From: Octopus sinensis
Taxonomy: Eukaryota
Assembly: GCF_006345805.1 (NCBI RefSeq)
Contig: NC_042999.1
Location: forward strand, 112,716,001 to 112,780,000
Direction of reading: 5' to 3'
Length of the DNA: 64,000 nt
Shown here piece after piece: positions 12,553-63,932 of this stretch; position 1 is the first letter of the stretch; each line of letters starts with the position of its first letter. The notes under the pieces were generated by a model. The model worked only from the letters and a program-made list of their open reading frames with translations. It did no database searches and was not told where the DNA came from. Made by a program: the position numbers and the translations under genes.

Positions 12553-14478
12553 TCATCATCATCATCATCATCATTTAGCGTCCGCTTTCCATGCTAGCAT
12601 GGGTTGGACGGGTCAACTGGGGTCTGTGAAGCTGGAAGGCTTCGTCAGGCCCAGTCAGATCTGGCAGTGTTTCTACGGCTGGATGCCCTTCCTAACGCCA
12701 ACCACTCCGCGAGTGTAGTGGGTGTTTTTTACGTGCCACCTGCACAGGTGCCAGACAGAGCTGGCGAACGGCCACGAACGGATGGTGCTTTTACGTGTCA
12801 CCGGCACGGGGCCAGGCGATGCTGGCAACGGACACGAACGGATGGTGCTTTTACGTGCCACCGACACAGGGCCAGACAGAGCTGGCAAACGGCCACGAAC
12901 GGACGGTGCTTTTACGTGTCACCGGCACGGGGGCCAGCCGAGGCTGGCAACGGACGCAAACGGATGGTGCTTTTACGTGCCACCGACACGGTTGCCAGAC
13001 AGAGCTGGCAAACGGCCACGAACGGACGGTGCTTTTATGTGTCACCGGCACGGGGGCCAGCCAAGGCTGGCAACGGACACGAACGGATGGTGCTTTTACG
13101 TGCCACCGACACAGGGCCAGACAGAGCTGGCAAACGGCCACGAACGGACGGTGCTTTTACGTGTCACCGACACGGGGCCAGGCGAGGCTGACAACGAACA
13201 CGAACACGAACGGATGGTGCTTTTACGTGCCACCGACACGGGGGCCAGGCAGAGCTGGCAAACGGCCACGAGCGAATGGTGCTTTTACGTATCACCGGCA
13301 CGGGTGCCAGACGAGGCTGACAGCGGACACGAACGGATGGGTCACTTAACCCCTGCTTTCTGATATATGATTTGATTTTGATTGTTCTCACTGGTCTTGC
13401 CGGGTCTTCTCACGCACAGCATACTTCCATAGGTCTCGGTCTCTGGTCATTTCCTTGGTGAGACCTAGAGTTCGAAGGTCGTGCTTCACCACCTCGACCC
13501 AGGTTTTCCTGGGTCTACCTCTTCCACAGGTCCCCTCAACTGCCAGGGTGTGGCACTTTTTCACACACCTATCTTCATCCATTCTCACCACATGACCATA
13601 CCAGCGCAATCGTCTCTCTTGCACACAACATCTGATGCCTCTTAGGTCCAACTTTTCTCTCAAGGTACTTACACTCTGTCGACTATGAACACTGACATTA
13701 CACATCCAACGGAGCATACTAGCTTCATTTCTCGCGAGCTTACGCATGTCCTCAGCAGTCACGGCCCATGTTTCACTGCCATGTAGCATGGCTGTTCGTA
13801 CACATGCATCATACAGTCTGCCTTTTACTCTGAGCGAGAGGCCTTTAGTCACCAACAGAGGTAAGAGCTCCCTAAACTTTGCCTAGGCTATTCTTACTCT
13901 AGCCATTACACTTTCAGCACACCCACCCCCACTACTGACTGGGTCACCAAGATAACGGAAGCTATCAACTACTTCTAGTTTTTCCCCCTGGAAAGTGACG
14001 GAAGTTGTTTTCTGCAGATTTTCAGAGGTTAATGCTCCCGAGCATCTGCCACATACAAAAACCATCTTCCTAGTTAGCCTTCCTATGACATTGCTGCACC
14101 TCTTATGTGTCCATAGCTTACACTTGGTGCATCTTATAGAGTTTCTACCTACACCTTTTCTACAGATTGAGCAGGGCCATCTACCTGAAGGCGTTTGTGA
14201 TTTGTCTACCTTCCTACTTATTAGGACTTTGGTTTTAGCTAGGTTGACTCTAAGGCCCTTCGATTCTAAACCATGCTTCCACACCTGAAACTTCTTCTCC
14301 AGTTCTGATAATGACTCAGCAATTAGAGCAAGGTCATCAGCATAGAGGAGCTCCCAGGGGCATCCTGTCTTGAATTCCTCCATTATTGCCTGGAGGACTA
14401 TGATAAATAGGAGGGGGCTGAGGACTGAGCCTTGGTGGACCCCTACCTCTACCCGGAATTCTTCACTGTACTCATTGC
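12553..14478 (-). mobile_element. Young 5'-truncated RTE-clade LINE (RT C-terminal half, 3' UTR with tandem array, (GAT)n tail)
   Basis: GVHQGSVLSPLLF, LLYADDL, DSFRYLG and RGRPRKTW motifs. One continuous frame from 14478 to 13388, broken only by a TGG>TAG stop at 13883-85. Ends in (ATG)n. Confidence 0.92.
12741..13340 (+). repeat. GC-rich tandem array of ten ~60-bp units alternating between two variants (A/B dimer)
   Basis: GGTGCTTTTACGTG(C/T)CACC recurs about every 60 bp, alternating GCCAGACAGAGCTGGCAAACGGCCACG and GCCAG(C/G)CGAGGCTGGCAACGGACACG units. Confidence 0.95.
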
Positions 14479-15315
14479 CAAAATATATATATATATATGA
14501 ATGTATATATATGTGCGTGTGTACATATATGTATACATGTATATATGTGTATGTGTGTATATATGTATGTATATAGCGATAATATGTGTATATAGATATG
14601 CACATATAGTCTCTATGTGGTAAGAAGTTTGCATCCTAATCATATGGTTTCAGATTCAGTCCCACTGTGTGGTACCTTGGGTAAGCATCTTCTGCTATAG
14701 CAGCCCCAAGCTAACCAAAACCTTCTTGATAGAAACAAGCTAATCTAGTGAATATGTATATCTAGCATTTAAGAGGCTATGCACTTCTCACCAGCATGTC
14801 TGCAGAGTCATCAACATTTCACAGAGGCATGAAACCAATGGTAGCATTCTGACCAGTTATATGTCATTACCTATAATATATATATATTAATCAATCATCA
14901 TAGAGTAGATAGAGTAATAAATGTGTTGAATCCAGACCTGAAGATTGGGAATATGTCGATCTAATTGAGTATTGAAACTAGAGACCTTATATCACAAAAA
15001 TACCGACTTACTGTCATGAAACATGTGTTGTCTTTAAAATGGAAAGTATGAGATTCTGAATAGATATAGTAAGTATCATATTTAATATTTTATGGCTTGG
15101 TCGGGTATAATATCTTTAAATATTGATTGAGTTGAGGATGGTTCTGTCTCTAAAACTAATTTTATATATATATATTATGTAGAAGGGTTAAAATCCAAGC
15201 TGTGTACTCTTGAAGTTCATGTGCTTGTTCTAATATTTCAAATGTTATATTTGTGTGAGGTATGTATAAGAGTTGAAAATTCTGGAAAATATTTTTGGCA
15301 GAGTAATTATATCTC

Positions 15316-17894: not shown

Positions 17895-19990
17895 AACTTA
17901 ACTTAGATAACTTAGATTGGTTTTGGCTATTATCAGCCCAGGACATGACTAATGCAATAGCACCACCTGGAAAAGTCTTTTAATTAATTATTTTGGGACA
18001 CCATGGACCACTCAAGCAGAGAGTTGTTGTTGGCTGAGACATATCCAGGTTTAAGTGGCTTATCCTATATTTCCTGGAGGAATTTTACCAGGTACCACTT
18101 GAAAGTTGTTGGGTCTTTTTCTACTTTAATTTCTTTCAGGATAACATTGAAAAGAGCAGGACCATTTGCACTGAAGAAATTGTGTCACAATGTTCTTATG
18201 TGATGTGATCTCAACATTTGTAGGAGGCACATTGCACAGGGTCCTAGTCTTGGGTGAATTCTAAACATAATACTGATATCATTTGGATAATATTGGTGGA
18301 ATATTTTCCACATAGTGCAAATAATGTATCACTCACAATGGTATTGTAAAGAATAGAGCTTCAGCTGTTTAAGTCAAGCCCAATAATCAAGTCCTATCAT
18401 GCCATTTATTTTTTTAGTGATTGATCTTTGTGGCACTTTGGTCCTCATTATGTCTTGTTTTTTGTAGGGAGACCACAATGGGCAGCAGTATTTGAGGTGG
18501 GACCTAGCAAATGTGGTGAAGAGAAGGATGATGGTTTTATGATACCTAAATTGAAAAGTTCTGAAGATCTATGAGCACATTCTGTGGGCAACATCAACAT
18601 TTTTGTTGATGTGCACACTGCAGCTAAGGTAGCTGCTGACAATTACACCTAAGTCTCTGATATTATCCAACAGTTCAAGTAGGTCTCCTGACAGTAGTGT
18701 ATATGGTTGTTTGAGTGTGCCCTCTTTTCCAAAGTGGATGAGCTCAAATTTTTCTTTGTTCAACTGCATACTGTTTTTTTTTTGTACCCACTAGGTTACT
18801 GCACAAAGATCTGATTGAAGCATTGTTCAATCATATGCTCCCTTAATGACTTTCTGAAGTTTAGAGTCATCTGCAAATATTTTAATGGTGCTATGTTCAA
18901 TGGAATCTGCAATATCATTGACATAGACAATAAAAAGAAGTGGACCCAGCACAGTACCCTGTGGGATTCCATTGATGACTTTTGCTGGTCTTGAGTGGAT
19001 GCCATCAACCACAACATGCTGGGTCCTGTTTGTTAGGAAATACTTAATCCATTGAAGTAACTTTCCACCAACTCCAGCATTGGATAGTTTCCTTAACAGT
19101 GTATTGAGGTCGACTCTGTCAAAGACCATGCTGAAATTAAGGTATATGACATCAGCATTGGTGAAGGAGCTGTGTTAGACAGTCCCTCCCACCACGCCAT
19201 GCTGGTTGCAATTGAGATGATTTTGCTTTTGCTCTAGGAAAGCTGTTATTCTTGATCTCAACACTCTCTCAAATATTTTGATATGTGAGGTGAGTGAGAT
19301 TGGATGATAGTTTACTGGGGGCAATTTATTCCTTTTTTTTAAAGATAGTAACGACTAACTGGGAGAGAAGGTTTTTTATTCTCTTGATGAGTGCTTTTCA
19401 TTGTTTTGGAATCCTGCATTTATTGTTATTTATGAGGCGTGAGGGCGTATGTTTTGAGCACATGTGGGTGACTGTCTTCAAATAGGTGCCATGCATTTGA
19501 GTTTGTTATGGTATTAGAGGAAGCCAGAGTGAAGGACCAGCCCACTTGCAATAAGTCTTCAGTGATCGCACTCCAGTTTGACTTGTATAAATTCATATTA
19601 TCAAATGGATGCACTGGAGTTAGTGATTTATGCCAAATTTTTGGATGCTGAAGATTGATTGAGGTTACAGAGTACTATGTCATGATCAGACAGGAGGGTT
19701 CTTTCCACTGTGATGTTATGGATACTGTTAGCATGATTGCTTAACGCTAGATCCAAGACACTTTGGTTGTTTCTGGTTGGTTCATGGATAAGTTGTGACA
19801 GGAAAAAATTATCCATAAATTTGAAAAGTAACTCCACTACTGCTTTGTCTGAGCTTGAGGTGAAGGTTCTTGGTCTAACAATATTAGTGGACCAATCTAC
19901 AGAGGGTAGGTTAAAGTCGCCCATTATCAGAATATTTCCTGGATTACATTGCAGGAGGAAAGATTTGATCTTCTCAAGGCACTCTTGAAA
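17895..19990 (-). mobile_element. Degraded CR1/Jockey-group LINE (endonuclease remnant, RT, 3' UTR)
   Basis: MGDFNLPSVDW, GIPQGTVLGPLLFIVYVND, IFADDSKL and NIRDLGVIV motifs in frameshifted pieces; (ATCTAAGTT)n-like tail near 17900. Confidence 0.9.
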
Positions 19991-42984: not shown

Positions 42985-44732
42985 ATCATAACATGCTTGA
43001 ATGTTTGAATGATGACAGGACGAAAGTGAGAACAGGTGTTGTATGTCTATCAAGCGAACATGAAAACCTTCTTCTTTTCAGGCACTAAATAACATCTCCA
43101 CTCCCCATGCCTCTTCCCACATTCCTTTCCCAGATTTTAGAGTTGGCACTGTCAATGTAGGCACACTGAAAGGTAGGTCTAGTGAGATTGTAGAGATGCT
43201 TGAACAGAGACGTGTTGATGTATGCTGCATGCAAGAGGTAAGGTGGAGAGGAGTTTCAGCCAGGGTCCTCGCAGGCAAGGCACATAAGTATAAAATCTTC
43301 TGGAAATGTAACAGTGATGGAGTAAAGGGTATAGGCATACACCTCATAGAGAAACAGGTGGATAAGGTCATAGAGGTGGTCAGGGTATGCGATAGAGTAC
43401 TTAAGCTTAGGCTAGTCCTGCAGAATAGTATAGCTACAATTATCTCTGCCTACACCCCACAAGCAGGCCTACTAAATGATCAGAAGGACCACCTTTATGA
43501 TACCCTTCTACAAGCTACCTCAAAGACGAGTAGTAATGATCTCATCTTTGTGGCTGGAGATTTTTATGGTCATGTTGGACAGCAATCCAGTATCTTCCAT
43601 GGTGTTCATGGGGCCCATGAAATTGGTTCCCGAAAGGAAGAGGGAACTAGGCTACTGGAGTTCTGTGATGCATGCAACCTAATAATCTGCAACACTAACT
43701 TCAAGAAGCCAGACAGCCACCTGATAACCTATCAATCAGGCGACTCTGCTAGCCAGATTGATTTCATCCTCACCAGACATACAATGTTACAAGGTTGCTC
43801 TTTAATACAAAGACCCTCCCTGGTGAAGAATGTACCCCTCAGCGTAGATTAATAGTGACTTTAGACTTGAGGCCAGAAGGATGTCAAGTAGCAGACATTT
43901 CCAGAAAAAAAGTATTTGGAAGCTAAAGAACCCTTCTCATGGTCACAGATTTAGGGACATCCTCATTGAGAAATTTGATGAGAGGGAGGAGCTACAGACT
44001 CCGGACATAGAGGGTAACTGGAAATTCCCGTGGGACAGCTTACTGAGCACCACAGACCAAATCTGTAGCTGGTGCAAAGTCCCTGCCAGACCTAGAGTAA
44101 CGTGGTAGTGGAATAATATGGTAGACAAGGCCATTAGAGCAAAGAAACAAGCCTGGAAAGTCTGGAAGAGTTGGAGTAGCAGGGAACTGTACCAGATAAC
44201 CAGAAGGGAGGCTGGGCAACAGGTATACATAGCCAAGGACGAAGCAGAAAAGAAGTTTGCCAATGTCCAGTGACGTGAGGACCAAAGAACTGAAGTATTT
44301 CAGATTGCAAGACAGTATGTGAGAGAAAATTGTGATGTCACAGGAGAGAAATGTGTCCGCATGGATGATGGTGTACTTGCTTTTAATGATTCTGAAAAGA
44401 AATAAGGTTGGAGAAGCCATATAGAAGGCTGCTAAATGTGGAGAATGAATGGGAGGAAGAGAGCCTGCCAAATGTTGACCCAGTAGAGGGACCAGCTACC
44501 CAAATAGATAGCACCCTGGTAGATAAAGCAATTAAAGATATGAAGTCAGGAAAAGCCCCCAGCCCATCAGGAATCACTGCTGAGATGCTTAAAATATCTG
44601 GTGGTGTGGGTCATGGCCCTGTCACCCATATTGTAAACCAGGTAGTTCACGAAGGAGTCATACCCAATGGCTGGCGTAGCAGCATCATAGTCAACTGCTA
44701 CAAAGGTAAAGGTGATGCTTTAGATAGAACAT
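42985..44732 (+). mobile_element. RTE LINE 5' portion (AP endonuclease plus linker), 3'-truncated
   Basis: VGTVNVGTLKGRS, CCMQEVRW, ISAYTPQ, VAGDFYGHVG, SQIDFIL and GKAPSPSGITAEMLK motifs; several stops and frameshifts. Confidence 0.9.
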
Positions 44733-45067: not shown

Positions 45068-47779
45068 TGTAACGAACTTAATGTGAGTGAATATCTTCGT
45101 GCACTTTTGGGGTGCACAAAGCAATCACTCACTAGCCGTTGCTTTAATAATCCAGAATCTCTACTAGTCAGAAACAACAAGACGCAGACGTAAAATATAC
45201 ATATAACTACTTTATTCTCTTTCTTGGTAAACAATAACAATACTGGTGTTATCTGATGTCCTTGATTCTGGGCGCGCAAGGCTGAAAGTTAATAGATTGT
45301 AATATTTACAATCTTCAGCCCAAAAACAGAAAAGGATTCAAGATGGCGTCGAACAATGGAGACGATGTTGGTCTGCAACAATTTGGTAAGGACTGCTAGA
45401 AGCTAGTTCCAACGGAGAGAAAATATATCGCGTGACGTCGCCTTCAATCGCTGGGTCCCAAGTCCTCGATGACTGCTGCTAGTGGTCAAACGTTCTACGA
45501 CCCCCTTGCCTCGCTAACTACCACGATAGGCAAGCGGGTCGTGCTTCCGGTGGTTCGCGCATGCGCGAGAGGGCCCTTCCTTTCTCTGCCTTGGTAAAGG
45601 CACCAACACGTGCGAAATACAAATGGACGGCGCGCGCACCGTTATAATATCACTACAAGGCTCCCCTCCAGTGCGTACGCACGAAAGGAAACTTATTGTA
45701 GTGACTGCAAAACTCAAGGTGGACACCAGATAACCAAATAGCACACAATAATATAATGGCAAAATTTATAACATACACAAGAAATTTACTAAAGGAAAAA
45801 GAGAAAAAATACTCAATGAGCAAAATCAAGAGTGCATGCATGAAAGTGTATACGTCACAAAGTATAGAGCCTTCCGCTGTAGGAAGCGGAGGGAATGCAA
45901 AACTCACAGTTAATGAACCTAGGCGAAATTAAAATCCAACTTCTCTAAAGGTGGTTGATCCTGCGAAATAGCAGTTAAATCAATTGCTGCAGGAGAGGAA
46001 ATGGAATTGGCAGAAGCTCGCTAGTAACACAAAAGGCAAAGGTGCAAACATGCTGGTGTGATGCGCGACACAGATAATTTTCTGTTAATTACGTGACCAA
46101 CAGTGGTCTAACAGGGAAAAATAATTACGCCCATACATAGGCGCAGCGCATGTGAACATCTGACATTCTATGAGTTGGGAAAAGAATTAGGCTAACGCAC
46201 GTGTTGCAAAAACAAGGCAAGTACATGTGCGAAGCAAAAAACACATGAAATGCAATGGTGCTTGCCAGACCGAAAAAACAGCAAATGAATATGCCAGTGG
46301 TTAAGCGATTATATGCTTCGTTCGTATAGGAACAAAAGTATGACATGCTGGCGCGTTATAATGGACAAACAACCCTCTCTATGTATACGTGACCGACCTA
46401 GGGTCTATAGAAATGAGGGGTGTCCACAAAAGGCAAATTTAGCATGGAACAAACAAGCGAGAAAAGCATGTGTGACGTATGTATGTGAGAGAGAGCATTT
46501 ATGTGTGTGTACGTGTGTGCGACAGAAATACATACAAGGTGAATGCGAGCAAAATATAAAAACAGCGCATAGAAAAAATGTCTCTCATGTGCTATTCCAG
46601 ACAAGAGTTAATTTACCAGTCTGTAATAGCCTGATGTACAATAGCAGTTCGTTCCGTAACAGAAATGTTGAAATCACAAAATGCAGATGCCAGTTGAACA
46701 CATATCGTGTAGCGGTTGTGGCTTCAATGCTGTGACAGGTTAACTGGAACAGAAGAATCTCGTAGATAGACGGTGCTGTTTATCCTTGGTGTGCATATGC
46801 ACAAACGGCAAGTGGACCAAACTTCCGCGAGTTGCTATGTACATCTTGGTGGAGGTCGACGGTGTTGAAAGGCGACGGTGGTGGAAGGCGACTGTAGTGG
46901 ACTTGGGACAACATCGTTCTTAGTGATGATGGCGACGACGTGAAGTAGACAGACGACGATGATGATGGCGAAGGCAGAGAAATAGCATCGATGATGTGAT
47001 GGCGTCCGTCATCATGTTGAAGAATAAAAGGGCTCCTTCTATAACGGTCCGAGAGGACGGAAACAAATCGTCGAAAGTTGATGCGTAGAGTTAAATCGTG
47101 TTCCGACTTCGCAGAAAAACTGGATTTTTTTTTGTTGTTAAGTGATCTCTGGTTTTAGACCAGAATCACGTCGGGAGGTCACCACTGTAACGAACTTAAT
47201 GTGAGTGAATATCTTCGTGCACTTTTGGGGTGCACAAAGCAATCACTCACTAGCCGTTGCTTTAATAATCCAGAATCTCTACTAGTCAGAAACAACAAGA
47301 CGCAGACGTAAAATATACATATAACTACTTTATTCTCTTTCTTGGTAAACAATAACAATACTGGTGTTATCTGATGTCCTTGATTCTGGGCGCGCAAGGC
47401 TGAAAGTTAATAGATTGTAATATTTACAATCTTCAGCCCAAAAACAGAAAAGGATTCAAGATGGCGTCGAACAATGGAGACGATGTTGGTCTGCAACAAT
47501 TTGGTAAGGACTGCTAGAAGCTAGTTCCAACGGAGAGAAAATATATCACGTGACGTCGCCTTCAATCGCTGGGTCCCAAGTCCTCGATGACTGCTGCTAG
47601 TGGTCAAACGTTCTACGACCCCCTTGCCTCGCTAACTACCATGATAGGCAAGCGGGTCGTGCTTCCGGTGGTTCGCGCATGTGCGAGAGGGCCCTTCCTT
47701 TCTCTGCCTTGGTAAAGGCACCAACATGCGCGAAATACAAATGGACGGCGCGCGCGCGCACCGTTATAATATCACTACA
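45068..47779 (-). mobile_element. Complete non-autonomous LTR retrotransposon (TRIM/LARD-like, 2712 bp), tRNA-Trp primed
   Basis: LTRs 45068-45657 (590 bp) and 47186-47779 (594 bp), both TG...CA, about 99% identical. ATAT target-site duplication at 45064-67 and 47780-83. Minus-strand PBS TGGTGACCTCCCGACGTGATT next to 47185; PPT GGAGGGGAGCCT at 45658-69. No gag/pol ORF in the 1.5-kb interior. Confidence 0.93.
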
Positions 47780-49667
47780 ATATAAAAAAAAATTACATGT
47801 TGACATTTGCGGGTGATGTAATACTATTGTAAAAGACAGAGACAAGGAATTTTAGACACACATAGACATACATTTATGCATGTCAGTTGTCTCATATGTA
47901 TATGTATGTGTAGATGTGTGTGTGTGTGTGTTTAATGTATCTAATGCAAAAACACACTCAGACATACACTTACACACATACACTCATATACAAAATGTGA
48001 TGTTGTCATCGTCATCCTCATGGTTGAGCAGTTTGCAAATGCATAGGGAACAGACAGAATGCATGTCAGTCATCACATATATGTGTGTTTAATAATGTAT
48101 CTTACGTGGAAACAGACACACTCACAGACACATACACACTCATATACAAAATGTAACATTGTCATCGTCGATGTGATATAAAATGTCCTGTAATATAGCT
48201 GACTATAGAAAGATTATCTCTAAAATGTTATATTGTTTCAATCAAAGTGAAAAAAAGAATTACATGTTGATACTCATGGGATGTAATGATTTGATTTGGT
48301 CGAGCCATTTGAGAAGGCATAGGGAATTGACAGACAGGCAGACAAAGGTTTTATATATATATATATATAGGTAAGGAATGTTTTCGGGATTTTTTTCTTT
48401 TAATTTCATAGTTGTATACCAATATTATTGGCAGAGGTGTTAAACATGCACCACATCCCTTTACCCTTTACATAAAAAAAAAAACAAACAGAAGGTGGCA
48501 TGCATGTTTAACATCTCTACTGAATCATCCAAGGAGAAATAACATATTTACTTTATGAACAGCACCATAGACAGTTTTACTGATTATTTTACTCAAAAGT
48601 AAGTAAATTCAAGTGATAGAAGGAACTACATTCAATAAATTGAAATTAACTGTTTTACTAACTGAAGGTTTTAATAACTCTGTTGCTATTTTTTTATTAC
48701 CATTTCTGTTTTATTTTAGTCTCTCCATCTTAGTCTTTTATTTGCTGTTACTTTTTATCACTCAGTCCAGCTATTTCCAGTAGGTTAAGCGGTCACTTAC
48801 AATTTCCTTAAGAGAGCCAGATAGGGCATTCAATGTATTAGACAGACAATATGTTGTCTGTTTTTCTAGATGCTCATCTGTTTTAAATGTACCAATTATG
48901 ACCATCACATCCATTGGGGGGGGGGGCTAAATACAGTGTTCTCCACCCAACCTCACCTTGTAACTGTTTTTAATGATGCATAATTTTGCATGTGCAAAAG
49001 GTTCAAGAAATCTATTTTCTGCTTGGAAAATTTTTCAGTTTTAGATCTTAAACTGGGATATCCAAGCATCCTTGATAGAGCATTTGAGAGAAGTATGAAT
49101 GCCACAGCTGCATTTCCCCATCACTATAATATCCTTTCCCTTGTAACCTCCAGAGAAATTGTAAGATACCAACTTCTGTTTTGATTCAAGAATATATATT
49201 TTATTGTTGCTTATGGTATTTAGGTCAAATAGGTCAAACCCTGATCAAGCAGAAAATTTATCGCAGGCATTCTAGTCAACCATCTTGTCTTTCCCTTTTA
49301 TTTTTAGTTGTAGTCATCTGAGATTGCATTATCCAATATTAAATAATGACGTATTCTCATTTCATATAAAGGATCATTTGGTATAATCATACAGCCAAAT
49401 ATTCTTGGCTTTGAATAAAGTTTGCTGATCTGTCCATCTTAGGCTGGCATTAATAGAATGGTTTGTTCACTTAAGCATTGCTTAATTGTTTGAATAAATA
49501 TCAATGTTAAGGTTTGCTAGATTCAAATTGAGTATATGAAAAATATACAGGAATCTTTATCTATAATTGATTTTGATTTAACTTTTTTTTTCAGCTTAAT
49601 GAAACATTGTTATATAGCAAGAACATAATGCTAATATATTTTCTTATTGTATATCTTTTCAGTCAAA

Positions 49668-50966
49668 ATGAGTTTAATGGATGAATTAGTATCAGCAGGG
49701 GTTGACTCAAATGAGTTTTTGGGCAATCCTCTGAAGTATGACGATTTTGTTGCAACAAATAATTTGGATGATTCCTCTTTGTCACATTCAGTTTGTGAGG
49801 ACTTTACAGTGGACTTCACTGACATGAAAGATATTTACCCTGGCAGTAGATGTAAAAATTTATATGGTAATGTTGATACAACTAACAATAATAATTCTTT
49901 GTTTGAAAACTGTACCATGAATTTGGAGCAAGAACTTGAGCAAGCAGTGACTTTAACTGGTTCCTCAATGGCAACTACTTCAAACTTGGTTACTAGTATT
50001 AAAGACCATGATGGAGATAATATTGGTAATGATGTTACCAATAATAGTAATGACCATGGAGATAATGAAATTGACAACAATCATAACAGTGATTATGGGG
50101 ATGATGGCTCCAAATTCTTATGTGGAAATTTAGTTGATGAATATGATGTTACTGCAGAGACAGACAAAGATATCTCGAGTGTTGTAAATAACTTCAGTCT
50201 TGAAAGAAACATGGAAAAAGAATGTACTTTGATAAAGGATGAAATTAATGATGGAAACAGTTTGGGAAGTCATCTTATTGATACAGAAAAGACAAGACTT
50301 TCTACTGAAATTGCTGTTGATGTTGATATGACAGAGAGCCCCACTAAAATTACCAATGATGTGGATATGATAAAGACTAGGTCCCCTACCAAAATTGACC
50401 TTGATGTGGATAGGATAAAGACTGAATCCTCTACAGAAATTGACATTGATGTGGATATGATAAAGACCAGGTCCCCTACTGAAATTGACCTTGATATGGA
50501 TAGAATAAAGACTGAATCCTCTACAGAAATTGACATTGATGTCGATATGATAGAGACTGAATCCCCTGTCAAAAATTCTAACACTATAAATAGTTTTGCT
50601 GCTGAAGAAACTCTCAATGCTAGTATAAAGACAGAGCCAGCTTACAAAGTTACCGTTGACTGTAACAATGCAAACAGTGTGACAATGTCATCTATAAAGA
50701 GCGAGACTGACCATACAAATAAAAGTGTAGTTGTACAATCAGCACAGGATTCACAGTTAGAGGCCTGTGAATCATTTGAAGATTTATATCTGCAAGAAAA
50801 GTTTTTAAAGAAAGAAAGAGAAGTGGATTCTTTAAGAAAGCAGTTAGATGATAAACAAAAAGGGATTCATCATGCTGTGAATTTTGGTAAGCAACTTCTT
50901 GAAGAAAATGAGGAACTCAAAGAAAAAGTGCACAAACTTGAGCAGAAAATGATTACAATTGATGAG
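49668..50966 (+). CDS. SPDL1: Spindly coding exon 1 (433 codons): acidic low-complexity N-terminal extension plus start of coiled coil with CC1 box
   Basis: Acceptor ttttcAG at 49661-62, ATG at 49668, donor GAG|GTAATG at 50967. The C-terminal part EVDSLRKQLDDKQKGIHHAVNFGKQLLEENEEL aligns from memory with human Spindly ITNLRCRLKEAEEERLKAAQYGLQLVESQNEL. Confidence 0.85.
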
Positions 50967-51726
50967 GTAATGTATTCTTTAGATAATCATGAATAAAGGC
51001 ATGAGTTTGCAGTACTGAAAGTATATAGATGCTAGTAAATATACTCATTTTCTACATGCATACAAGTGCATGTATATATTAGTATGTAAATATTAGCATG
51101 TAGTTGCATGCTGAGTTATATATGTTATAATTTTAGCATCAGGTGGTATATAACAGATTTAAATATAATACTGTGATTTAATCATTCACTAAATACTATT
51201 ATCCATTCACTCAATTACTTTCTACCATTTTCAAATATAGTAAAAAAAATCAGGTCAAATCTTAGCAAAGCATATTCTATACTGTTGGTAAAACTATTGC
51301 ATGTGTGTACATATATATATATGTATATATAGTGTGTAGCTTTCACCTGTTGACTTAAAGACTAGATGTACTTTTACATTGAATTCTTTACAGTTTTTTT
51401 CAATTTCAGTTACTTGATTTTTAGACTTGTTTCTATTACTTTATTTTTTTTAACACTCTCAGAAGGAATTTTTGTCAATAATTTCAATTTATCAAAATTT
51501 TCTCTGTGCACTATACTACATTTGTGAGTCTATCATATTTGTATTTAGTAAGTAGAATGCTCTTCTGAACCATATTATTGATATTCATTACATTCTCTGT
51601 GTATGTATTTGTATGTGAATATAAATATACATAAAATATAGGGTAGTGAGTTTTTTTAATAGAAATTTCACTACCATTGGCCTAGCATGTATAAAAAGTT
51701 AATAGACAGCATATTCTCAATATGAA

Positions 51727-53946: not shown

Positions 53947-54108
53947 GAACTGAAAAATGAGATACATTCTACAAAATTGAAGTTAGAATCCAAAGAGTAC
54001 ATGGAAAAGCAATACAATGAAGAAATTTCTCTGCTCCAAAATGAAATAACTCAATTTAAAACAGAGGTGGATTCATACCAGAAACAAGAAGCTACTTTGA
54101 AAAGAGAA
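53947..54108 (+). CDS. SPDL1: Spindly coding exon 2 (54 codons, ELKNEIHSTK...EATLKRE), coiled coil
   Basis: ttgcAG acceptor, GTAAGT donor at 54109, 162 nt open in phase 0, heptad-like composition. Confidence 0.85.
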
Positions 54109-57584: not shown

Positions 57585-57734
57585 ACAAATTTGAAAATTA
57601 AAATTACCAGCAGTCATGCTAACACAAATCGAGTGGAGGAGGAGTTGTTGAGGGTTAAAAGAAGACTTGATGAAAAACAGCTAGAATATGAAGAAGTAAG
57701 AAGTGAAATGAACTCCTATCAAAAAACTCTTGAG
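57585..57734 (+). CDS. SPDL1: Spindly coding exon 4 (50 codons, TNLKIK...YQKTLE)
   Basis: ctttacAG acceptor after a (CT)n tract, GTATGC donor at 57735, 150 nt in phase 0. Confidence 0.85.
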
Positions 57735-58227: not shown

Positions 58228-58326
58228 GTATCTCAAAGAGAAATCCTTGACTTAAAGGCTCAGTTGTATGCTGCTCAGGTTGAGAACATGAATCGGCAAG
58301 ACAGAGGCAATTCTCTTTTCTCTGAG
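58228..58326 (+). CDS. SPDL1: Spindly coding exon 5 (33 codons) ending in the Spindly motif GNSLFSE
   Basis: Translation VSQREILDLKAQLYAAQVENMNRQDRGNSLFSE; canonical AG/GT sites. Matches the human Spindly box GNSLFAEV. Confidence 0.92.
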
Positions 58327-63821: not shown

Positions 63822-63932
63822 GTGGAAGATCGCCGAATTTCTGTTGAAAAAACATTAATGGCTCTACAAGAAAATTACCAAGTCTTGAAAGAGAAACATA
63901 ATTTGGAAAAGCAACAAAATTATAAACTCAAA
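63822..63932 (+). CDS. SPDL1: Spindly coding exon 6 (37 codons, VEDRRISVEKTLMALQENYQVLKEKHNLEKQQNYKLK); gene continues beyond the window
   Basis: Completes GNSLFSE|VEDRR; resembles human VEDRRAAMERQLISMKVKYQSLKKQ. AG at 63820-21, GTATGG donor at 63933. Confidence 0.92.

Follow-up and report, generated by a model that had tools for sequence, protein, structure and literature searches.

The stretch of Octopus sinensis DNA analysed here (the window: 64,000 nucleotides, NCBI RefSeq assembly GCF_006345805.1, contig NC_042999.1, positions 112,716,001 to 112,780,000 of the forward strand, numbered below from its first letter) carries the 5' part of a gene for Spindly, a CC1-box adaptor protein that couples the dynein motor to chromosomes during cell division, in which the CC1 box is preceded by a long acidic N-terminal extension. 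A stop-free open reading frame (ORF) of 449 codons (49647..50996, + strand) includes an in-frame ATG at 49668, five bases 3' of a polypyrimidine tract and AG acceptor (49661-49662). The exon delimited in this way (49663-50966, + strand) ends at a GT donor (50967-50968) after codon 433, counting from the ATG, and its last 64 codons specify a heptad-rich helix that contains the CC1 box (A403-V-N-F-G407, nt 50874-50888), with the sequence KQLLEENEEL next. Five further stop-free segments lie downstream, all with AG/GT borders and all in phase 0, and when spliced to the CC1-box exon they yield 672 amino acids (aa). The Spindly motif GNSLFSEVEDRR, which includes F633, is divided as GNSLFSE/VEDRR between the last two exons of the window. 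The gene runs past the window end, the protein XP_029633598.1 being 952 aa in total. The exons, together with the start of the first coiled coil (CC1), are as follows.

49663..50966, + strand: CC1-box exon with the whole extension; AG 49661-62, ATG 49668, GT 50967-68; the arrangement of acceptor followed by ATG, and of IDE/gt at the donor, is also found in Argonauta and in a second octopod (see below)
50775..50966, + strand: start of the Spindly CC1 coiled coil, aa 370-433; AlphaFold2 (AF2) helix from aa 370 with predicted local distance difference test scores (pLDDT) of 70-87; CC1 box 50874-50888; ratio of non-synonymous to synonymous substitution rates (dN/dS) 0.39
53947..54108, + strand: Spindly exon, aa 434-487; AG/GT, phase 0; identical to XP_029633598.1
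56652..56846, + strand: Spindly exon, aa 488-552; contains the coiled-coil break YPSQSLCDDN (AF2 break aa 525-534)
57585..57734, + strand: Spindly exon, aa 553-602; AG/GT, phase 0
58228..58326, + strand: Spindly exon, aa 603-635; first half of the motif, GNSLFSE, at 58306-58326, with F633
63822..63932, + strand: Spindly exon, aa 636-672; second half of the motif, VEDRR, at 63822-63836

A first-pass annotation, made from the letters of the window alone, had proposed that a single exon is open from ATG 49668 into the coiled coil, placing the CC1 box at aa 403-407, and both the ORF and its AG/GT borders bear this out. Its second proposal, that the spacing between CC1 box and Spindly motif is conserved, is upheld by the six-exon join: the distance from A403 to F633 is 230 aa, compared with 235 aa in fish Spindly and 232 aa in both Pinctada and Argonauta.

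To judge by its sequence, the gene is O. sinensis Spindly (SPDL1) and its core is that of a canonical Spindly adaptor, with CC1 box, spacing, Spindly motif and C-terminal CaaX all present; proteins of this family bind RZZ at kinetochores and activate dynein-dynactin. An exhaustive search with aa 1-375 returned the 952-aa XP_029633598.1 (protein Spindly isoform X1, Octopus sinensis) at 100% identity. The genomic locus of this protein (chromosome CM016861.1) is the same as the window over 17,333 nt, its annotated coding sequence begins at window position 49668 and it bears a precomputed Pfam PF28219 (Spindly) assignment. Against a fish Spindly the core (aa 371-672) scores E 4.2e-7, with 95% of the query covered, and against a Mytilus Spindly-like protein E 7.7e-8; a profile search matches Pinctada and Crassostrea Spindly at E about 1e-57. 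Two word-indexed homologue searches missed XP_029633598.1 and the Argonauta protein; exhaustive representative and profile searches recovered both.

The second alanine of the vertebrate CC1 box (AAxxG) is replaced by valine in octopods (AVNFG, AVKFG, AVNLG), with AAELG in cuttlefish and SAEIG in Pinctada. The Spindly motif follows a coiled-coil break (AF2 aa 624-632) and lies 230 aa past the box. The CaaX box, a putative farnesylation site, is CAQQ in XP_029633598.1 (beyond the window), CAQQ in Argonauta and CKQQ in cuttlefish. As regards the HAP1/TRAK family, the core scored 15.4 bits against the HAP1_N model, short of the 33.9 cut-off (E 0.011). Searches of the exon and core with a copy of Pfam that lacks the PF28219 model gave sub-threshold matches only (DUF5644, DUF745 and HAP1_N), and a sequence search of PDB gave no match. 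The one departure from the usual layout concerns a trait that is typical of Spindly rather than defining: the CC1 box commonly lies within ~30 aa of Met1, but here it is at aa 403.

Comparison with known Spindly proteins places this difference at the N-terminus. Octopus and human or vertebrate Spindly share the same order of elements, namely the CC1 box, a CC1 of ~230-235 aa with a break ~130 aa past the box, GNSLF[AS]EVEDRR, CC2/CC3 and CaaX (PMC9481740), but vertebrate Spindly starts ~22-24 residues before the CC1 box, as against ~400 in octopus; in one fish Spindly the box is at aa 25. Bivalve Spindly (Pinctada, with Spindly-like proteins in Crassostrea and Mytilus) belongs to the same gene family, has its ATG a few bases past an acceptor and, in Pinctada, has the 232-aa spacing given above. 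There is no extension in Pinctada, however: in P. imbricata FSP39_008350 the ATG follows the acceptor and is separated from the CC1 box (aa 28) by 27 residues only, with in-frame stops just upstream. The extension is thus absent from the bivalve and vertebrate Spindly sequences examined.

An open frame of this length is improbable by chance. The stop-free run of 453 codons is the longest in all six frames of the window (G+C 36%), the second being of 262 codons, which coincides with a reverse-transcriptase fragment, and the median 10. At the stop-trinucleotide frequency of the window (5.8%) the probability of 385 open codons is ~1e-10, and shuffling the exon 2000 times produced open runs of at most 126 codons.

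Relatives provide evidence of a different kind. A second octopod is represented by Logan contigs L001/L002 (SRR11869385/SRR11869394), which carry intron flanks on both sides and must thus be genomic or unspliced sequence, not spliced cDNA. The orthologous exon is open for 543 codons in this species, and alignment of its protein with that of O. sinensis requires seven indels (1, 135, 4, 7, 7, 2 and 3 aa), 7/7 of which are in frame; across ~310 nt of flanking intron from the same pair, 12/13 indels are not multiples of three. The Nei-Gojobori dN/dS between these two octopods, at a dS of 0.23, comes to 0.42 over aa 1-375 (bootstrap 0.28-0.62), as against 0.39 over the CC1 part. By segment of the tail it is 0.26 for aa 1-110, 0.52 for the repeats described below and 0.72 for aa 301-375.

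The exon is larger still in Argonauta hians, where Spindly (GAB1600604.1) is 1408 aa in length with its CC1 box at aa 854. A single 884-codon exon encodes this region in the Argonauta genome, with matching acceptor cag/TTAAAATG and donor ATTGATGAG/gt. The first 195 aa of the Argonauta protein are 50% identical to the second octopod (E 4e-45) in an alignment that spans the 135-aa piece corresponding to the largest of the indels above. O. sinensis and O. vulgaris are without this 135-codon (405-nt) segment, the missing piece mapping to window ~49986-49997; since it is present in both the second octopod and Argonauta, the segment is ancestral and has been lost by in-frame deletion in O. sinensis/vulgaris.

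The cuttlefish Acanthosepion pharaonis is instructive with regard to annotation. Its public Spindly model (670 aa) places the CC1 box only ~55 aa after an LMDEL/EDFT motif, but the annotated intron responsible (CAHIKZ030005169.1, 30497-32167, 1671 nt) is stop-free and the flanking exons are in one frame. Read through, the ORF has its ATG right after the acceptor, reaches the usual donor after 654 codons and carries AAELG at aa 624. The public model therefore probably omits 557 aa of a ~600-aa extension, as read from the genomic sequence. We had considered from the spliced cuttlefish model that the long linker might be specific to octopods, an idea rejected once the annotated intron was found to translate open and in frame. 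The first exon of that model (MLTFLLE...), 20 kb upstream, also looks doubtful.

The extension is kept in all four O. sinensis RefSeq isoforms (X1-X4) and in all three O. vulgaris isoforms. The O. vulgaris annotation had alternative forms added with PASA from Iso-Seq and RNA-seq (PMC10700109) and so lends the extension indirect transcript support. That the extension is coding follows from the improbable open run, the in-frame indels, the dN/dS of 0.42 and the open exons in Argonauta and cuttlefish, and it is very probable that a real, translated, disordered extension of Spindly exists throughout the coleoids. The extra ~370-380 aa were taken in the first-pass annotation to be a true addition, and so they are, being in the same exon as the CC1 box and open and under purifying selection in relatives. 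The comparison with other cephalopod loci that it had suggested yields an open exon with dN/dS 0.42 and no frameshift in the orthologous exon of the relatives examined. Its description of a lineage-specific module is correct in that Pinctada and a fish are without the extension, but the range is wider than one sequence could show: the second octopod, Argonauta and cuttlefish have it also, making it at least coleoid-wide.

The same observations bear on whether the ORF might be transcribed yet serve as an untranslated 5' leader, translation beginning internally at, for example, Met340 (50685). This residue is conserved in the second octopod, and starting there would leave an N-terminus ~63 aa before the CC1 box, nearer the canonical layout. 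A leader, however, would not be expected to stay stop-free for 366-815 codons in four genomes, to confine 7/7 indels to multiples of three whilst those of flanking introns are not so confined, or to give dN/dS values of 0.26-0.42, nor should its first 107 codons be conserved from Octopus to Argonauta; we consider this explanation very improbable indeed.

On the evidence of exon structure, the extension arose inside an ancestral first coding exon of the form 'ATG + CC1 box', and it is found in both octopodiform and decapodiform lineages. A foreign origin would make it the product of a gene fusion, or of a transposable element that became exonic, and not of growth inside the exon, and might be entertained on the grounds that long interspersed nuclear element (LINE) fragments are abundant in the window. 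The extension, however, has no Pfam match, and among 1.84 billion representative proteins searched the matches were confined to Spindly, apart from three unrelated proteins that are hit through tandem repeats of their own. Furthermore, the exon frame (ATG after acceptor, IDE/gt) is that of the short bivalve exon. The chance that the piece is foreign is accordingly slender in the extreme.

Several points weigh against a translated, disordered, coleoid-wide extension. Parts of the tail are near neutral, dN/dS reaching 0.72 over aa 301-375 and 0.52 in the repeats. The public cuttlefish model removes most of the tail at canonical GT..AG sites, such that a shorter isoform may exist in some species. 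Logan holds no transcript contig for full Spindly, the contigs being genomic only. Homology to the cuttlefish tail is moderate (E 0.003 and 7e-5, see below), and a hidden Markov model (HMM) of the octopod N-terminal module gave no significant match to the spliced cuttlefish model, as gauged with 2000 shuffles. Finally, the AF2 alignment was shallow (8 sequences), and low pLDDT is suggestive of disorder rather than proof of it.

The second of these points raises the possibility that both forms exist, full-length Spindly being accompanied by a shorter isoform produced by an in-frame exitron or an internal start, so that the tail is a regulated, optional module. The cuttlefish model drops its 1671 nt in frame at GT..AG and joins the LMDEL/EDFT motifs to the CC1 region, and some O. 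sinensis RefSeq isoforms lack 45 or 90 nt of the repeat. The cuttlefish splice, however, is possibly a choice of the gene predictor only, and 0/7 Octopus isoforms remove the tail. As for the Octopus gaps, isoforms X2-X4 differ from X1 solely by the absence of 15 or 30 aa at 45-nt repeat units (50357-50567); 45/90-nt introns would be unusually short and the gaps match repeat units, so these isoforms have the look of polymorphism in repeat number or of artefacts of read alignment. We therefore view an optional tail as unlikely, although less so than an untranslated leader.

Ahead of the coiled coil, the tail can be divided into four parts.

49668..49988, + strand: conserved N-terminal module, aa 1-107, with the SLMDELVSA helix, EDFTVDF and NLEQELEQA; dN/dS 0.26
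49989..50318, + strand: variable acidic linker rich in N, D and S, aa 108-217, whose 5' edge is the site of the 135-codon deletion; pLDDT ~27-37
50319..50582, + strand: six 15-aa tandem units, aa 218-305, consensus D[VM]D[MR]I[KE]T[RE]S[PS][TV][KE]..; Tandem Repeats Finder (TRF) period 45/90 nt at 50357-50567
50583..50774, + strand: pre-coil segment, aa 306-369, in which the internal ATG at 50685 is Met340, also present in the second octopod; dN/dS 0.72 (aa 301-375)

The first-pass annotation had described the extension as rich in D, E, N, S and T and likely to be disordered, and the composition agrees. These five residues make up 51.9% of aa 1-366, compared with 35.2% of the core, and aa 1-366 have a net charge of -49 and a pI of 4.08. 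In the AF2 model aa 18-368 stay under a pLDDT of 50, and a helix predicted with confidence begins at aa 370 and is interrupted at 525-534 and 624-632. The first break corresponds roughly to the register break that d'Amico et al. place around residue 155 of human CC1, and the second is the break ahead of the Spindly motif.

Within the N-terminal module AF2 predicts helices at aa 2-9 (SLMDELVSAG) and aa 87-93 (NLEQELEQA). Identity to Argonauta in this module is ~50% when traced via the second octopod (E 4e-45) and 42% directly. Octopus 1-106 matches cuttlefish 9-143 by blastp at E 0.003 with motif order shared, hhalign aligns the NLEQEL segments of the two at E 7e-5 over 22 columns, and a Smith-Waterman shuffle test of the octopod module against cuttlefish gives p ~0.012-0.017; the clearer matches emerge only when the unspliced cuttlefish exon is used. 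The cuttlefish NLEQELQQA element is located inside a 44-aa unit present in six copies (TRF period 132 nt), all of them within the annotated intron. A loose likeness of the N-terminal helix to the dynein light-intermediate-chain helix is not conserved in cuttlefish.

Argonauta has ~22 units (..DMTKLCSPNKTAT..) homologous to the 15-aa repeats of O. sinensis. The tandem arrays have expanded separately in each lineage (x6 in O. sinensis, ~x22 in Argonauta, 44-aa x6 in cuttlefish). Extension length differs accordingly, from about 370 aa in O. sinensis through ~600 in cuttlefish to ~820 in Argonauta, but net charge does not follow: it is -49 here and -66, -57 and -55 in the other three species, over tail lengths of 366-815 aa. 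This near-constancy is perhaps a sign that total charge, and not sequence, is what selection acts on. Spindly of A. hians and of A. pharaonis thus resembles that of Octopus in its single-exon extension, N-terminal motifs and acidic, disordered character (charge ~-55), and differs in tail length, in repeat families and in the 135-aa segment, whose presence depends on lineage. The tails of the four species contain 3, 1, 20 and 1 full S-P-x-K sites (Argonauta having the 20), a count that is not conserved, and the idea of cyclin-dependent kinase sites in the tail is a weak one.

Such variability is what might be expected if the tail, although translated, were inert, that is, a by-product of slippage and repeat expansion whose frame is kept only for the sake of the downstream coil. 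Tail length varies more than two-fold, the 135-aa piece has been lost in O. sinensis/vulgaris, the repeats differ by lineage and dN/dS nears neutrality in parts of the tail. Moreover, human Spindly carrying an N-terminal mCherry tag is usable in vitro (PMC9481740). Against this, dN/dS is 0.26 over the first 107 aa, whose motifs can still be recognised in cuttlefish as well as in octopods, the overall dN/dS interval excludes 1 and net charge stays between -49 and -66 across tails of very different length. A dispensable tail could also have been replaced by a downstream start during the evolution of the group. Inertness is a possibility to be taken seriously, if a minority one, and is somewhat likelier than an optional tail.

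What a functional tail might do can be approached from the human protein. In the closed form of human Spindly the CC1 box (Ala23, Gly27) faces CC2, and a fragment comprising residues 22-605 remains closed whilst 33-605 opens (PMC9481740), from which it follows that residues before the CC1 box are unneeded for closure. The N-terminally mCherry-tagged protein was used in in-vitro binding assays (PMC9481740), with which a large N-terminal addition is therefore compatible. Human Spindly is a parallel dimer (PMC9481740), so that two tails would project from the N-terminal end of the coil, putting two acidic tails beside the docking site of the dynein light-intermediate-chain helix. Engagement of dynein-dynactin by the coil would be left unchanged. 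TRAK1/2, HAP1 and BICDL1 all have a disordered stretch before the CC1 box that is compatible with dynein-dynactin activation; their stretches are not as long as the octopus tail (tens to ~200 aa) and bear no sequence relationship to it.

The strongest constraint lies at the far N-terminus and is followed by a spacer tolerant of large length changes, a pattern that suggests a tether presenting short linear motifs. We propose that the tails most likely act as a length-tolerant acidic tether that would offer the N-terminal motifs either to a partner or to the coil of Spindly itself. Such a tether could adjust how accessible the CC1 box is and where the equilibrium between closed and open forms lies, and charge, possibly with Ser-Pro phosphorylation, could modulate the tether. 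The first-pass annotation had offered altered autoinhibition or corona polymerisation as possible effects of the extension. By analogy with the human protein a specific role of the tail in CC1-box access or autoinhibition may be suggested, but only tentatively. A bolder version, and a long shot, would make the tail a cephalopod-specific regulatory arm in which the N-terminal helices (SLMDELxSAG, NLEQELxQA), borne on a tether of ~-50 charge, gate dynein recruitment and corona assembly. The helices would then bind in cis where the CC1 box meets CC2, or act as competitors of the light-intermediate-chain helix, and the Ser-Pro-rich repeats would make docking phosphorylation-dependent.

The position of the start codon deserves separate comment. 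ATG 49668, where the first-pass annotation began the protein, is in frame, but an upstream exon could add 16 residues. A six-frame search for the 16 extra residues of a 968-aa O. vulgaris isoform located two identical candidates.

45343..45385, + strand: candidate first coding exon, copy 1; ATG + MASNNGDDVGLQQF + G, then a GTAAGG donor
47461..47503, + strand: candidate first coding exon, copy 2; identical to copy 1

Either copy is in phase with the acceptor of the second exon, the CC1-box exon, at 49662/49663 (G/TC AAA ATG, encoding V K M). The ATG of each stands in a favourable context for initiation (AAGATGG), and translation from it would supply MASNNGDDVGLQQFVK, which the 968-aa O. vulgaris isoform also has. 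The Octopus Spindly start codon may on this basis lie 16 codons farther upstream, in which case the extension would be 386 aa. The two candidates sit one in each copy of a 595-bp duplicated segment (45068-45658 and 47186-47780; 98.5% identity, 2118 bp apart), which could be a true duplication of promoter and exon 1 or an assembly artefact.

No other host gene is evident upstream of Spindly within the window, and Rfam and tRNA scans of the window found nothing. Fragments of non-LTR (long terminal repeat) retrotransposons (Pfam Exo_endo_phos_2 and RVT_1, one with a PHD-like finger) are found at 43196-43852 (+), 13883-14605 (-), 18827-19129 (-) and 19628-19924 (-), and (TA)n/(CA)n microsatellites are abundant throughout. 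A G+C-richer region at 12604-13363 (+) has overlapping long ORFs and repeated ...GHERMVLLRATDTGP... units with no Pfam match, and is probably a satellite or a repeat internal to a transposable element.

The extension is already present in public gene models, and is hence undescribed rather than unseen; among papers with both 'Spindly' and 'Octopus', judged by title and abstract, none was found on octopus Spindly or its extension. The practical value of the present analysis for annotation lies in the cuttlefish model, the Octopus start codon and the repeat 'isoforms'. The locus also offers a clean example of an exon enlarged several-fold through internal repeat expansion.

Understanding of the core mechanism of Spindly is unchanged by these observations. 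The N-terminal end of the protein, however, is both the binding site for the dynein light intermediate chain and the landing place of the autoinhibitory fold-back, and is nearly bare in the animals studied. A clade-wide acidic tail of 370-820 residues under purifying selection constitutes a natural experiment on the N-terminal load that a CC1-box adaptor can carry, and bears on whether autoinhibition can be modulated from the N-terminus. Were the tail to prove a regulatory arm, coleoid Spindly would possess a gating mechanism that the Spindly of other animals is without.

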